From NCBI GenBank assembly GCA_038496445.1, contig JALMLS010000124.1, positions 1 through 64,000 of the forward strand: 64,000 nt of DNA, in the 5' to 3' direction. Position 1 is the first letter of the stretch. Each line of letters opens with the position of its first letter. The notes below the pieces were generated by a model, which saw only the letters and a program-made list of their open reading frames with translations, had not been told where the DNA came from and made no database searches. Source of the DNA: Trichosphaerium sp. ATCC 40318. Its lineage: Eukaryota; Protista; Tubulinea. A program made the position numbers and the translations under genes. Below are positions 45,275 through 64,000 of the stretch, in pieces.

Positions 45275-46663
45275 ATGTTACAACTCATCTCGTTACTTTG
45301 CTTACTGTCGCTGGTATACCTCAGTTCGGCCCAATGTCCTGGTCTTGCTGCTGGTACACCTCCCACCGACAGTGCAGTAGTTCCATCTATCGCTGAATAC
45401 GACGCCTTGGTTAAAGACCTCGACATCATGGCTGTGATTACACGCATTAGAGAAGAAATGAGATCTTCACAATCTTGTTTTCCTGCCGATAACTTCAACG
45501 GTGTTGATACCTACGGACCATTATTCATTAGATTAGCCTGGCATTGCGGTGGTACATTCCGTGAAACCGACAATCTAGGCGGTTGCGCTGGGGGTAGACA
45601 ACGTTTCGAACCAGAAAGAAGTTGGGAGGATAATACGAATTTGGATAAAGCACGTGCCCTTCTCGCTGATATCAAAGAAGAATTCGGTGGTGCATTAAGT
45701 TGGGGCGATCTCATGGTTTTCGCTGGTACTGCAGCAATTCTTGATATGAACGGACCTGTTACTGATCTATGCGCTGGACGTGTCGATGAAGCTGATGGAT
45801 CTGCTAGTGAACCACTTGGACCTGGTCCTCAAGCTGATGCGGCTTGCCCTTTTGGAAACGGAAACTGCTCCCGACCTTTGGGTGCTTCGACGATTGGTTT
45901 GATTTACGTCAACCCAGAAGGTTTCATGGGAAACCCTGATCCAGTTAGAAGTGCTGTACAAGTTCGTGATGTATTCTCTCGTATGGATTTCGATGATAGA
46001 GAAACAGTTGCTTTGATTGGCGGTGGACACGCTTTCGGTAAGTGCCATGGTCCTTGTCCTGATGGTCCTGGAGTACCACCAAACGTAAATATCACAAATC
46101 CTTGGGAAGGTCAATGTGGAACAGGTGTAGGTGTTGATACATACACTAGCGGATTCGAAGGCGCTTGGACAGACACACCAGCGCAGTGGACAAACCAGTA
46201 CTTTCAGTTGCTTGTTGATGAGACATACGAACTCTTTATTGGTCCTGGAGATAAGTATCAATGGAGGATAGCAAACAGTACGAGAGATCTCCTGATGTTG
46301 ACTACAGACATTGCTCTTATCAAGGATGCCGAGTTCAATGCTATTGTTGAAGAGTTTGCTGCCGATATTACAGCATTGAATGAAGCCTTTTCTAATGCTT
46401 GGTTCAAGCTTACTCACAGAGGAGGCGTTTGGTCTAACAGTATGCATTGTTTGAATTTCACTGTGAATGGTGTTCCTGTTGCTCCTCCAACTGATGCCGT
46501 CCCTCCAACTGATGCCACTGATGCTCCAACCGAAGGAACAGCACAGCCTAGTGCGCCTATCGATACTACGGGCCCAACTACTGCTCCTCCTTCCAGTTTC
46601 GTTCAAATCCAAGTTTGCGTAATGGTCATTGTACTCAGCCTTGTCTTCACTTTACTTCAATAG
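45275..46663 (+). CDS. Secreted, anchored single-domain catalase-peroxidase (KatG N-terminal domain only)
   Basis: Signal peptide; YGPLFIRLAWH, SWEDNTNLDKAR, GLIYVNPEG, FSRM, GGHAFGKCHG, TSGFEGAWT and AWFKLTHR; then a P/T stalk and hydrophobic tail; intronless. Confidence 0.9.
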   Translation: MLQLISLLCLLSLVYLSSAQCPGLAAGTPPTDSAVVPSIAEYDALVKDLDIMAVITRIREEMRSSQSCFPADNFNGVDTYGPLFIRLAWHCGGTFRETDNLGGCAGGRQRFEPERSWEDNTNLDKARALLADIKEEFGGALSWGDLMVFAGTAAILDMNGPVTDLCAGRVDEADGSASEPLGPGPQADAACPFGNGNCSRPLGASTIGLIYVNPEGFMGNPDPVRSAVQVRDVFSRMDFDDRETVALIGGGHAFGKCHGPCPDGPGVPPNVNITNPWEGQCGTGVGVDTYTSGFEGAWTDTPAQWTNQYFQLLVDETYELFIGPGDKYQWRIANSTRDLLMLTTDIALIKDAEFNAIVEEFAADITALNEAFSNAWFKLTHRGGVWSNSMHCLNFTVNGVPVAPPTDAVPPTDATDAPTEGTAQPSAPIDTTGPTTAPPSSFVQIQVCVMVIVLSLVFTLLQ

Positions 46664-51564: not shown

Positions 51565-52875
51565 ATGACTAGTATACGGTGTGAAGGCACAGGCTCTCAT
51601 TTTGTTGAAACCATACCGACAGAGCTTATTGCAGCCGTTTTTGAGTATACTCCATATAAAACGCGATATTCGGTTGCTCAGGCGTGCTGGCTATTCTACG
51701 ACATTATTCATAGACATGTTGGTTACGGTGAAATCGTTATCAGGTCTTCAGAGGCCATAAAGCGTTTAATTGACCAGAAATCGCTTTTAAACAATACACT
51801 AGTATCATTCCAGAATTTCAAGGCCTCACCCGAGGAAATACGTTCTTTGGCTGGTGTTAAAAAGTTAACTTTCTGGGATTTGGAAGTGAGCGATAAGTGC
51901 CTTGAGGCACTTGCAGGTGTTAAAGAAATAGATATATTCGGATGTCCCAATATCACAGATGAAGGCATACAATTCTTATCAGGTGTACATACGATAGATG
52001 TGAGCTACATGAGGCAGTTGACAGATAAGTCATTGGAAGCTATTTCAGGTGCTTACAAAGTAAATATTTCGCAATGTAGAAGGATAACTGATGAAGGATT
52101 AAAATCACTTGCTGGTGTTCATTGGATAAATATCAGATCTTGCAAAGTCACAGACAATGGATTAAAATCACTTGCTGGAGCTCATACAATAATAATGTCG
52201 AGTTGTGATAATATTGATGGATCTTGTTTTTCGCACTTGGCTCAAGCTAAAAACACAAACGGCGAAATGTGTCTTCACGTCATTGATATTTCTGCTTGCG
52301 ATAATGTCATCCTTGATCATGTGAAACAATTATCAGGTGTACATACTGCCATGTTATCTTACTTAAAGGTTAAAGATGAGGATATCATACCTCTTGTTGG
52401 TGTCAGCGTACTCAGCTTGAATAGGTGTCATAAGCTAACTGCCGCTTCAATATCAGCTTTTTCTGGTATTCACACCATCTATTTGAGACAATTAGTCATA
52501 CAAGACTCATGCCTTGAATGTTTATCAGGTGTATATAGGATAGACTTGAACTCCTGTAAAGGTGTAACCGATACTGGGTTGAAATCACTTGCAGGAGTGC
52601 ATACTATTCACTTGGATGGTTGTAGTGATATCACAGATGAAGGTGTCATTCACCTTGCTGGTGTACAACAGATATGGTTGAATCAATGTGTAAAGATAAC
52701 AGATAGAGGTGTTAAGGCTCTTGCAGGTGTTCTTACAATAAGTCTAAAGAATTGTCCTCTTGTAACAGATGAAGGGATAACAGCTCTTCAAGGTGTTATT
52801 GGAATAGTTATAGAAGGTACAAAGTGTACAACAGATGCCGTCATTGCTTTGGGCGCACAAGTGAGGGTTCGTTGA
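51565..52875 (+). CDS. F-box + leucine-rich repeat protein
   Basis: IPTELIAAVFEY F-box, then ~13 repeats of LAGVHTI.L..C..ITDEG; intronless. Confidence 0.9.
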   Translation: MTSIRCEGTGSHFVETIPTELIAAVFEYTPYKTRYSVAQACWLFYDIIHRHVGYGEIVIRSSEAIKRLIDQKSLLNNTLVSFQNFKASPEEIRSLAGVKKLTFWDLEVSDKCLEALAGVKEIDIFGCPNITDEGIQFLSGVHTIDVSYMRQLTDKSLEAISGAYKVNISQCRRITDEGLKSLAGVHWINIRSCKVTDNGLKSLAGAHTIIMSSCDNIDGSCFSHLAQAKNTNGEMCLHVIDISACDNVILDHVKQLSGVHTAMLSYLKVKDEDIIPLVGVSVLSLNRCHKLTAASISAFSGIHTIYLRQLVIQDSCLECLSGVYRIDLNSCKGVTDTGLKSLAGVHTIHLDGCSDITDEGVIHLAGVQQIWLNQCVKITDRGVKALAGVLTISLKNCPLVTDEGITALQGVIGIVIEGTKCTTDAVIALGAQVRVR

Positions 52876-57898: not shown

Positions 57899-57977
57899 CT
57901 AACTTGTATAATTTTTCAGTGCTTGTTACGTCACGTGGTAGTGACTTTCTTAACGAAGACTTCATGTTACATGCTAG
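57899..57977 (-). promoter_or_regulatory. Type II SECIS element in the msrA 3' UTR
   Basis: Minus strand reads CTAGCATGTA ac ATGAA GTCTTCGTTA AG AAA GTCAC tacCAC GTGAC G TAACAAGCAC TGAA aaatta TACAAGTTAG: helix I, AUGA/GA core, helix II, unpaired AAA 12 nt after the core, apical ministem. Confidence 0.8.
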
Positions 57978-58047
57978 GAAAAAAAAATCGAACTAAATAA
58001 TTGAAATCCCATCTTTTCATCTTTACGCTCATATGTAGCATAGCTGT

Positions 58048-59043
58048 TTAAAGAACTAGTTTCTTTATATCTTCAGGAGGGTTCAAGGCAAGTATATCCT
58101 TCTTTAGACCTTCAACACTTCCATACCTGGCGATGTAGTTTGAAACAAATCTAAAACTTTCATCAGCGAAGTTATTCCATTTTTTTGAAACAGTTTCGGG
58201 TTTGGTGCCCTACTCGCGCTCTAAAAGGCACAAAAATGCCTTTTATTGATATTTTACGTACCCATTAAGCTTGCAAGCAAGCGGAGAAGTGATTACTTCT
58301 GCTTCAGATAAGCCAGCTGCTTTAAATACTTTTTTTTTGCCTCTGTTTTTGTTTGGTTAGATTTACGCTTTAAAATAACTAGATGTTTACTAAAGGTACC
58401 TTAGATAATACTTTTGATGGTATCCTTCAGCGTCAGTCCATTTTTCAGCCTTTTCAATGGCTGTGTAGATTTTTTGGCTGACTTCTTTCTACCTCCGAGT
58501 TTAGAAAAAAAAAAAGAAGTTTTAGCCGTTTTTCTTACCTCCTTGGCTTCAAATGTAGCTGTAGCTAATTTTTTTTGTTCTTCATTATGATAGTATATAG
58601 CTGAGCGGTATTGCTTGCCGCTAGGGTAAAATGGCGAATGACATTTCCAGAATACTTCCAACATCTCTGAGTAAGACGTCTAAATAACATAAGACGCGCA
58701 TTCGTTCCCTCCACAAGTATTCTTGATCATTACGGAGAAACTTGCAAAAAAACGTACAACGTCGGCGTCATATTCAATTCGTATGGATTCGCTATGATCA
58801 CCCATGCTGTAGTAAGTAGGGTTATCCTTCTTACCACCTGTGTAGCCAACATTTGTCGTGACTACTCCCGGTACGCAACAAAAGATTGCGTCCGGGGTCC
58901 AAAATCACCCTGTAAACGTTATTAGCTTGCTTCAAGGTAATAAATCTAACGTTTAATTTCAAGGCGGTTTAAAATCGATATAACTGTTGCGTACCAGTTG
59001 AAAAAGTGCATACTTCGATATTTGTTGGTTTTGCTGTTGTCAT
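58048..59043 (-). CDS. msrA: Selenocysteine-containing peptide methionine sulfoxide reductase A
   Basis: Removing intron 58910-58994 gives TFSTG-TGA-FWTPDAIF...VGYTGG...NPTY..MGDHSE; later QYRSAIYY and AEGYHQKYYL. TGA at 58905-58907 occupies the catalytic Cys position of GCFW. Confidence 0.9.
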
Positions 59044-60010
59044 AGTGCGTTTGTAACTAATTAATAATGTGGACTGTCTTAATTAGCGTTGACTTAACCA
59101 AATTCAGCGTATTGGGTTGATACGTCACTTGACGTGCCTTTAACACTTCCTTGTAAAACACTGTTTTACACTAAATACATCATTCGTCATCATTCGGAAA
59201 CCTTTACCGGTTTTACACTGTGCAAACATCGTTTAGAGACTGTTGTTAACTTTGTTAAAAAGCGAAATTGGTGGAGTATTGTTTTACACATGAAGCACTT
59301 GTTTGGGCTCCACTCAGGCAGTAACACCAATCTAAAACCGCTGAAAACCCTCGTACAAGGGGTTATGCAGCCAACTCACTACAACAGTCAGGAGTACTTT
59401 TTTGTCACTCCATTTGTAACTTACTAAAGTTCATAAGTTCAAAGCGCATCATAGCCTAACAAACTATAAATAAACTCCTCGCAATTTGAGTACAGCATTA
59501 GCAACAATATTTTTATATAAACCAGAGCCACGCTAACATCAATATGTGTCTATTGCTTCTCTGGCAACCAGTCACTTCCACCATTCCAAAAAATACTTTT
59601 CTAAAATGGATTCTCCATCTGCAACTATAGTGTCTTCTAGTGTTGGATCTACGGGCAAAAATTCAGGAGCTGGGCAAGTGGCCATTATTATGTTCACGTT
59701 AGAACATCTAAGCTCTTGCTTGCTATGTGGAAACCACTCTTACTATGACTGTGAATGGTTAGTGCCGCCTTGGAGCTTAGTGGATCCATATTTTTTTCCT
59801 AAGTTATTCAGATAGGCTTCAGTAAATCCGAGACCAAATATACCTAATTAGGAAGTCTAGGTACTATTCAGTGAAGTTTACAGTTCCCTGGCTGGCCATG
59901 TTGTATATACAACACTTTTAGTAGCTCCGTTTGATACGTCTAGCACCTACGCGTGAAAATGGCTGACTTGGTTATTTTTTCAACAAAACCATTCATTGGC
60001 GCACCTCTTC

Positions 60011-62573: not shown

Positions 62574-64000
62574 TTACGATGCTTCATCCAAGCTCATTCT
62601 TTCACCATGTTTATTCCACTTTTTGTATTCTGCTACTTTTTTGCCTTTGATGTAGGCACATTGTATCATTAATCGCCCACTCCAATACCACTCATTATAT
62701 TCTCCTTCAAACTCACCATTGATGTAGTTACAATGGCATCGTAATTGTCCATTCAAATGCCACTTTTTATATTCTCCTTCAAACTCACCATTGATGTAGG
62801 TACATTGGACCTTTAACTTGGAATAATAAGACTTGTACCGTCGCCCTTTTTGAAACCACTTCTTGTATTCTCCATGTTCTTTACCATTGATGTAGGCACA
62901 TTGGATCCTCAATTGCCCACTTTCATACCACTCGCTATATCCTCCTTCAAACTCACCATTGATGTAGGCACATTGGATCTTTGATTGTCCACTTTCATAC
63001 CACTCGTTATATTCTCCTTCTTTTTTACCTTTGACATAGTGACAATGGATCTTTGATTTGCCATTTTTGTACCACTCGTTATATTCTCCTTCAAAGTCAC
63101 CATTGATGTAGGTACATTGGATCGCTAATTGTCCATTTTTGTACCACTCGCTATATTCTCCTTCAAACTCACCATTGATGTAGTTACAATGGCATCGTAA
63201 TTGTCCATTCAAATGCCACTTTTTATATTCTCCTTCAAACTTACCATTGATGTAGGCACATTGGATCATTGATTGTCCACTTTCATACCACTTTTTATAT
63301 TCTCCTTCAAACTCACCATTGATGTAGTTACATTGGATCATTGATTGTCCACTTTCATACCACTTCTTAGATTCTCCTTCTTTTTTACCATTGATGTAAT
63401 TATACTTGTGCCGCAGCCTTCCATTTTCATACCACTTCTTATCTTCTCCTTCAAACTCACCATTGATGTAGTTACATTGGAACTGTAATTGGCCATTTTG
63501 AAACCACTTTTTATATTCTCCGTCTAGTGTACCATTGATGTAATTATACTTGTGCCGCAGCCTTCTATTTTCATACCACTTCTTATCTTCTCCTTCAAAC
63601 TCACCATTGATGTAATGACACTGGATCTCTAATTGGCCATTTTCAAACCACTCCTTAGATTCTCCTTCTTGCTTGTCATTGATATAGTCCCAATGTCTAG
63701 CCAGTTTTCCGTTTTTATGCCATTCCTTATATTCTCCTTCCTTTTTACCCTTGACATAAGTACCTTGGTACAGCAATTCCCCAGTTCTGTACCACCCCTT
63801 GTATTCCCCTTGTTCCTCACCATTAACATAAGTACACTGACTCTTCAATTCACTAATTCCCTTGGTTTTTTTCTCTTGCTTATATTCTTCTTTCAAAAAG
63901 ATGTAATACCAATCCTTAGATTCACCTTCTTTTTTACCGTTTATGTACATACACTGATTCTGCAATTGTCCATTATTATACCACTCCTTATATTCGCCTT
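62574..64000 (-). CDS. MORN-variant repeat protein, 5' end beyond window
   Basis: ~18 24-aa repeats EGEYKKWY.NGQL..QC.YING; the frame is open to the window edge. Confidence 0.9.
   Translation of the reverse strand, partial: GEYKEWYNNGQLQNQCMYINGKKEGESKDWYYIFLKEEYKQEKKTKGISELKSQCTYVNGEEQGEYKGWYRTGELLYQGTYVKGKKEGEYKEWHKNGKLARHWDYINDKQEGESKEWFENGQLEIQCHYINGEFEGEDKKWYENRRLRHKYNYINGTLDGEYKKWFQNGQLQFQCNYINGEFEGEDKKWYENGRLRHKYNYINGKKEGESKKWYESGQSMIQCNYINGEFEGEYKKWYESGQSMIQCAYINGKFEGEYKKWHLNGQLRCHCNYINGEFEGEYSEWYKNGQLAIQCTYINGDFEGEYNEWYKNGKSKIHCHYVKGKKEGEYNEWYESGQSKIQCAYINGEFEGGYSEWYESGQLRIQCAYINGKEHGEYKKWFQKGRRYKSYYSKLKVQCTYINGEFEGEYKKWHLNGQLRCHCNYINGEFEGEYNEWYWSGRLMIQCAYIKGKKVAEYKKWNKHGERMSLDEAS

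Follow-up and report, generated by a model that had tools for sequence, protein, structure and literature searches.

The minus strand of the window (the whole stretch of 64,000 nt of Trichosphaerium sp. DNA that was analysed) carries what we read as a nuclear six-exon gene for a methionine-S-sulfoxide reductase A (MsrA) of the CoMsrA type, with a predicted product of ∼204 residues in which selenocysteine (Sec), encoded by UGA, would be the nucleophile. From the sequence comparisons presented here we put the probability of this reading at about 0.9. CoMsrA, the enzyme of Clostridium (Alkaliphilus) oremlandii, is a natural selenoprotein, of which a Cys16 version was crystallised (PMC4333827, PMC4479559).

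Read directly from the window sequence, the gene extends from an ATG at 59043-59041 to a TAA at 58050-58048, and its six exons add up to 615 coding nucleotides (204 codons and the stop). Exons were defined by the reading frame together with canonical GT-AG sites, and all searches were run exon by exon. The features of the locus are listed below; the paralogue mentioned there is a second locus of the same genome, on contig C22.

58995-59043, minus strand: exon 1, with the ATG, 16 codons (MTTAKPTNIEVCTFST) and the first base of a Gly codon (G58995)
58910-58994, minus strand: intron 1, 85 nt, GTACGC...TTACAG, phase 1; position and phase are shared with an intron of the paralogue
58758-58909, minus strand: exon 2, with G|GG, the Sec codon and then FWTPDAIFCCVPGVVTTNVGYTGGKKDNPTYYSMGDHSESIRIEYDADV; Pfam PMSR match of 43.6 bits
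58905-58907, minus strand: putative Sec codon TGA, residue 18, at the catalytic position; G|GG TGA TTT TGG gives G-U-F-W after splicing
58859-58907, minus strand: hairpin at the UGA, resembling a Sec redefinition element (SRE); its basal stem includes the UGA and its apical loop falls at a Phe codon 21 nt past the UGA
58539-58679, minus strand: exon 3, 47 codons, with GT-AG introns of 78 nt and 50 nt on either side; Pfam PMSR match of 36.0 bits
58400-58488, minus strand: exon 4, ...AEGYHQKYYL followed by AG; Pfam PMSR match of 25.3 bits
58262-58342, minus strand: exon 5, which opens the C-terminal extension (...SPLACKLNG); length and phase as in the paralogue
58048-58150, minus strand: exon 6, with the TAA at 58050-58048; gapless over 32 codons against the last exon of the paralogue
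57899-57977, minus strand: putative type II SECIS element, with AUGA at 57965-57962, AAGAAA at 57951-57946, a mini-stem and GA at 57917-57916

An earlier reading made from the letters of the window alone (the sequence-only reading) had proposed the intron at 58910-58994 that creates G|GG TGA TTT TGG, and this is what the sequence holds: the intron has GT-AG borders and the TGA lies at 58907-58905. To that proposal we add the complete six-exon structure and the matches to the PMSR family in exons 2, 3 and 4. The donor sites of the GTACG type match those of other genes in the genome, e.g. the gene for SPS2, and exon 3 has the same length in the paralogue. At the N-terminus, the ...EVCTFSTG-U of exon 1 is similar to TATFALG-U in bacterial relatives and to IEVCSFATG-U in the paralogue. 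For exon 6 there are two in-frame acceptors, 58151 and 58127; we preferred 58151 because it gives the gapless alignment over 32 codons with the paralogue and an NG|FVS junction that, by eye, is like the bacterial NGYVS.

The three PMSR matches (Pfam PF01625) all score above the gathering cut-off of 23.7 bits, and they cover positions 9-60, 63-111 and 119-144 of the 153 positions of the profile, collinear over exons 2-4. In the PDB, the top matches of the same three exons were CoMsrA chains (4LWJ, 4LWK, 4LWL, 4LWM, 4U66, 4W8C and 7C13), again in collinear order: exon 2 corresponds to residues 17-65 (E = 4e-17), exon 3 to residues 67-105 and exon 4 to residues 118-142. The FW of exon 2 is Phe17-Trp18 of CoMsrA, which places the TGA at Sec16; thus, the catalytic G-C-F-W motif of MsrA, whose nucleophile stands at the N-terminus of helix 1, appears here as G-U-F-W, aligned to Cys/Sec16-Phe17-Trp18. 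With the list of active-site residues taken from PMC4333827, all five substrate-binding residues of CoMsrA (Tyr47, Glu55, Tyr90, His137 and Tyr140) were found to be identical in the exon-wise alignments.

The ∼60 residues that follow YHQKYYL form a C-terminal extension, as in CoMsrA. Exons 5 and 6, each searched alone, gave no match in Pfam, in the PDB or among the bacterial relatives, so homology of the extension to the ∼65-residue helical domain of the CoMsrA type is only suggested; by eye, the motif S-x-x-A-x-[KR]-[LV]-N-G-[FY]-V-S across the exon 5/6 junction is shared with the bacterial relatives. Three Cys residues besides the catalytic position are common to both paralogues, in EVC, CVPG and LACK.

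We then considered whether the TGA at 58907-58905 is a defect or a codon. A metagenome scan with exon 2 gave 80 loci, and the codon before FW could be scored in 78 of them. It was TGA in each of the 31 nearest relatives (identity 57-72%, ...TATFALG*FWGPD...) and TGC or TGT in all 47 more distant ones (GGCFWG...); on this division, the FW-x-PD branch of MsrA is, as judged from the alignments, a selenoprotein branch. This branch is represented in the genome by two loci only, the window gene and the C22 paralogue. Since the same genome also carries ordinary Cys MsrA genes (GAGCFWGTEKFF, GAGCFWG; on C4 and C132), the two loci belong to a separate Sec lineage.

The paralogue (L021, G000:C22:361500-365500) occupies positions 2470-1364 of the minus strand of its locus and has ∼219 codons in seven exons. 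Its TGA, at 2291-2289, stands in a G-U-F-W that is likewise made by an intron at the same place; its stop codon is also TGA, and it has no other in-frame stop. Five intron positions, with their phases, are common to the two copies, and the extra intron of the paralogue splits a Gly codon after ...TTTV. Identity between the two is 65% at the DNA level and 60% at the protein level, with pS of 0.75 (saturated) vs pN of 0.25, values by which the paralogue is a copy diverged under purifying selection. Retention of the TGA through saturated divergence, in a frame kept under such selection, argues that the codon is translated. The claim of the sequence-only reading that a UGA occupies the catalytic site is borne out by the alignment with Sec/Cys16 of CoMsrA and by retention of the codon in the paralogue and in the 31 relatives; on these comparisons, the TGA is a conserved Sec codon and not a defect.

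The SECIS-like element begins 70 nt past the TAA of the gene. Unconstrained minimum-energy folding of 57990-57890 gave −19.9 kcal/mol (z = −3.3). In the element, an internal loop brings AUGA opposite GA; a long helix I, a mini-stem of 5 bp and an unpaired AAGAAA that begins 10 nt past AUGA are further parts of the layout. Two of the 11 positions of helix II are mismatched (C.C and C.A), and the quartet contains U.A in place of U.U. The element had been described as a complete and well-formed type II SECIS; its motifs, its position and the shape of its free fold agree with that description, while the words ‘complete’ and ‘well-formed’ are too strong given the two helix II mismatches and the modest statistical support.

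The statistical support is as follows. Under fold-topology criteria that were written after the element had been seen, the SECIS topology occurred at one of the 622 ATGA sites on both strands of the window, and this one was the MsrA element; in the controls, two of five true elements passed, with no false positives among ∼800 sites. The SECIS models of Rfam gave no match at the MsrA locus even at E ≤ 10. In a scan that left out the GPx locus on C193, the same models found a single element of the genome, that of the GPx gene on C7 (38.5 bits), and missed those of SPS2, the paralogue and three other Sec-GPx genes; the blank at the MsrA element is therefore uninformative.

A covariance model (R2) was made from five SECIS elements of the genome other than those of MsrA (four from GPx genes and one from SPS2). 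Its alignment to the window's element is full length, with a score of 10.5 bits; the E-value is 8 over 136 kb and 0.05 within the 448-nt 3′ region, where the element is the top match. The element of the paralogue (at ∼1331-1250) ranked first in 136 kb with 19.3 bits (E = 0.03), and is thus the stronger of the two; it has the same layout and the same AAGAAA with different helix sequences. The five training elements score 40-56 bits, being matched by construction. In an alignment of all seven elements, itself fitted to the covariance model, AUGA, AAA and UGA are invariant in 7 of 7. The share of paired cells in helix II is 91%, as compared with 53% for shuffles and 26-50% for slid controls, and 28 cells are compensatory. 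On these grounds the MsrA element is very probably a working SECIS, yet the weakest of the seven.

Three earlier search devices were given up. The first hand-written SECIS descriptor was far too permissive (∼130 matches in the window); the second, overly strict, passed over four true elements, that of MsrA among them; and the covariance model R1, made from two GPx paralogues, was too sequence-specific and was replaced by R2.

The sequence-only reading had further supposed that the organism possesses a Sec machinery, and part of it was found. A tRNA-Sec with anticodon UCA is located on C5 (61.7 bits with the Rfam model in Infernal, for a cut-off of 47); its anticodon loop reads CUUCAAA, both the acceptor stem and the variable arm are long, and ARAGORN missed it. 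SepSecS is located on C99. SelD/SPS2 is itself a selenoprotein gene (L022, G000:C102:8400-13400, plus strand ∼1076-2765, SECIS at 2798-2874): it reads MAATNPKW...FSRLKG-TGA-G|CKIPQEEL, with Sec at the classical position and the Sec codon just 5′ of an intron. The part of the supposition that concerns PSTK and eEFSec did not find the same backing: an exon-wise search of the genome with the PSTK profile TIGR03575 gave no match, and the selB profile matched dozens of EF-Tu-like exons, among which eEFSec was not singled out. A single locus of the KTI12 family was found (G000:C9:465595-466264; L118, L119), which is either KTI12 proper or PSTK.

A wider selenoproteome had been expected as well, and it is present. 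Besides SPS2 (...LKG-U-G-CKIPQ), there are four Sec-GPx genes (L024 on C7, L025 and L026 on C82 and L029 on C193), each with NVA[ST]-x-TGA-G and a type II SECIS downstream; a fifth GPx gene (L028 on C49) has Cys at the active site (NVASECG). We also observed a GPx copy on C79 (L027) whose SECIS stretch is identical to that of one of the C82 copies. Several of the GPx SECIS elements have a U.U mismatch directly above the core, a feature known from Dictyostelium (PMC2375036). As ordinary gene callers would truncate or miss both the window MsrA gene and the C22 paralogue, annotation is expected to under-count the selenoproteome of this organism, which includes two MsrA genes, SPS2 and at least four GPx genes.

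TGA also serves as an ordinary terminator in this genome, in the C22 paralogue and in one GPx gene, hence the genetic code is standard. Within reading frames, TGA was seen only at the known Sec positions of SPS2, GPx and MsrA, and in every case a SECIS element lay downstream.

Apart from the SECIS, the coding sequence around the UGA carries a stable hairpin. Folding of the 64 nt at the start of exon 2 gives −25 kcal/mol, a stability reached by none of 200 shuffles; synonymous recodings were as stable in 2 of 1000 cases for the window copy and in 34 of 1000 for the C22 paralogue, and the hairpin is more stable in the window copy than in the paralogue. Within this stretch the paralogues are identical at 58 of 64 positions vs 65% overall, a conservation that rests on two sequences, the window copy and the C22 paralogue. 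None of the six differences touches a paired position of the consensus fold, and there are no compensatory changes. Where the two copies encode the same residue, the third codon position agrees in 15 of 18 cases in the hairpin vs 46 of 98 elsewhere (Fisher p = 0.004, in a post hoc comparison). The upstream introns of the two paralogues are unrelated in sequence, and exon identity runs past the extra intron of the paralogue; for these two reasons, selection at the mRNA level would fit the conservation better than a DNA conversion tract.

Several other explanations of the locus have to be weighed. The window copy could be a decaying duplicate, with a weakened SECIS, so that its transcript would yield a 17-residue peptide or undergo decay and only the C22 paralogue would be functional. 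Such a history would agree with the low SECIS score (10.5 bits against 19.3 for the paralogue and 40-56 for the training elements, the latter matched by construction), with the two helix II mismatches and with the lack of an Rfam match. However, Rfam equally misses the elements of SPS2 and of three other Sec-GPx genes, and the free fold of the window's element retains the SECIS shape. Decay is also at odds with six exons that keep an intact frame and canonical splice sites, with pN of 0.25 against saturated pS, with active-site residues that are all kept and with a hairpin at the UGA that is more stable here than in the paralogue. We consider a decaying duplicate to be quite improbable.

A still lower probability is assigned to the two remaining explanations. 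If the TGA had come about in a former Cys-MsrA gene, through nonsense mutation or faulty sequencing, the locus would be a pseudogene with a hairpin downstream by chance; what speaks for this is the general rarity of Sec genes only. A gene caller would take the TGA for a stop. The same TGA is present at an independent locus whose synonymous sites have diverged to saturation and in 31 of 31 nearest relatives, the solved member of the subfamily is natively a Sec enzyme, and a SECIS stands at the expected place in both paralogues, so that we find a mutation or error very hard to credit. Hardly more credible is a reading of UGA as Cys or Trp, through a changed code or SECIS-independent read-through. 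UGA is indeed reassigned in some protists, but here TGA ends the reading frames of the paralogue and of a GPx gene, in-frame TGAs are confined to the known Sec positions of SPS2, GPx and MsrA with SECIS elements downstream, and the genome has a dedicated tRNA-Sec and SepSecS. We thus retain the Sec-MsrA reading of the window gene.

As a selenoprotein gene, the locus would work in the following way. We infer that the gene is expressed and that selenium is incorporated: the SECIS in the 3′UTR (57977-57899) would recruit the SECIS-binding and Sec-specific elongation factors, and Sec-tRNA(UCA), made via SPS2 and SepSecS, would be inserted at the UGA instead of termination. The stable hairpin at the UGA would probably aid recoding in the manner of a Sec redefinition element. 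In the enzyme, the selenolate is predicted to attack the sulfoxide of Met-S-O, with release of Met and formation of a selenenic acid. The latter would be recycled by a thiol, that of glutaredoxin, of thioredoxin or of a Cys conserved in both paralogues.

The long open reading frames in the neighbourhood of the gene are the following.

45275-46660, plus strand: haem peroxidase (PF00141)
51565-52872, plus strand: F-box/LRR protein
62577-63965, minus strand: MORN-repeat protein

These are ordinary eukaryotic genes, which argues that the window is not bacterial contamination. A second SECIS-shaped element was seen at 59376-59434 on the minus strand, ∼330 nt upstream of the MsrA start, with AUGA, a 9-bp helix II, ACAAA, a 7-bp mini-stem and GA. 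It passes the strict descriptor and has a partial covariance-model match of 15.1 bits; left to fold freely, it does not take a SECIS-like shape. A small ORF on the minus strand (59542-59697), ∼105 nt 5′ of this element, ends in ...EKYFLEWWK-TGA-LVAREAIDTY-TGA; neither a Pfam match nor a paralogue was found for it. The stretch 59376-59697 may represent a very small selenoprotein gene next to MsrA, or a product of chance.

Among known systems the closest is CoMsrA. Sec occupies the same site in both proteins (16 there, 18 here) within G-U-F-W-x-P-D; the lengths are 209 vs ∼204 residues, and both continue past YHQKYYL into an extension. The bacterial gene has its SECIS in frame, whereas the present gene is eukaryotic, has introns and carries its SECIS in the 3′UTR. 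CoMsrA has a single Cys/Sec, while three further conserved Cys residues are present here, by which assignment to the ‘1-Cys type’ is not established.

Sec-MsrA of eukaryotes is known from Chlamydomonas, Ostreococcus and Thalassiosira (PMC2375036) and, among animals, from a sponge, Trichoplax, Nematostella, Capitella and amphioxus (PMC3473315); it is among the most widespread algal selenoproteins (PMC7539508). The patchy distribution over algae and bacteria stated in the sequence-only reading agrees with these three reports. Compared by their descriptions, the algal and invertebrate genes are of the same family, with UGA at the catalytic Cys and a 3′UTR SECIS; duplicated copies are common among them, and two copies are present here. 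The five selenoproteins of Dictyostelium do not include Sec-MsrA (PMC2375036), and the MsrA of Acanthamoeba, which was expressed in E. coli, was not described as a selenoprotein (PMC8038987); our literature search for Sec-MsrA in amoebae found no paper. As algae, marine invertebrates and bacteria already provide examples of Sec-MsrA, an amoeba-type host would be a modest extension, one that carries the CoMsrA-type Sec lineage into an amoeba-like protist. As this organism keeps both Sec- and Cys-MsrA, it offers a natural comparison of Sec with Cys within one cell.

Bacterial counterparts were seen in the metagenome loci L036-L066, which are 31 bacterial contigs in which the catalytic codon of MsrA is TGA and is followed immediately by a hairpin with a GGUUC loop. 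Bacterial Sec-MsrA ORFs that are complete in their contig have 191-206 residues past the Sec and a C-terminal domain with STAAARVNGYVSG. The Atlas clusters nearest to exon 2 consist of PMSR fragments of 39-57 residues, which may be Sec-MsrA genes that gene callers broke off at the TGA.

For the hairpin at the UGA two kinds of known element come into consideration. The SREs of SELENON and SELENOT, which stimulate recoding, are conserved stem-loops in the coding sequence that follow the UGA-Sec codon immediately on its 3′ side (PMC8704476). The window hairpin is like them a stem-loop at the UGA in coding sequence that is conserved beyond the needs of the protein; it differs in that its basal stem takes in the UGA itself, and the resemblance comes from structure and from conservation between two paralogues. 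The other kind is the SECIS of bacterial Sec-MsrA genes (L036-L043), with which the window hairpin has in common a GGACGC 5′ arm in the Pro-Asp-Ala codons and an apical loop that falls on the same Phe codon, 21 nt past the UGA. The bacterial elements carry a GGUUC loop on a G+C-rich stem, whereas the window hairpin has an A/U-rich upper stem and a different loop, and its 3′ arm lies in another reading frame than the bacterial 3′ arm. A GGUUC loop on a G+C-rich stem is of the kind bound by SelB. To our knowledge, eukaryotes are without a SelB-type reader, so any function of the window hairpin must differ from that of a bacterial SECIS.

One could speculate that the hairpin is a functional recoding enhancer that descends from the bacterial SECIS of a transferred Sec-MsrA gene, a possibility that we hold to be rather doubtful. 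On such a descent, the transferred gene would have gained introns and a 3′UTR SECIS, with the stem of the old SECIS reused as a redefinition element, and the hairpin would be a molecular trace of a selenoprotein gene crossing two incompatible Sec-decoding systems. As a candidate recoding enhancer at the place of the bacterial SECIS, the hairpin at the UGA bears on the movement of selenoprotein genes between domains.
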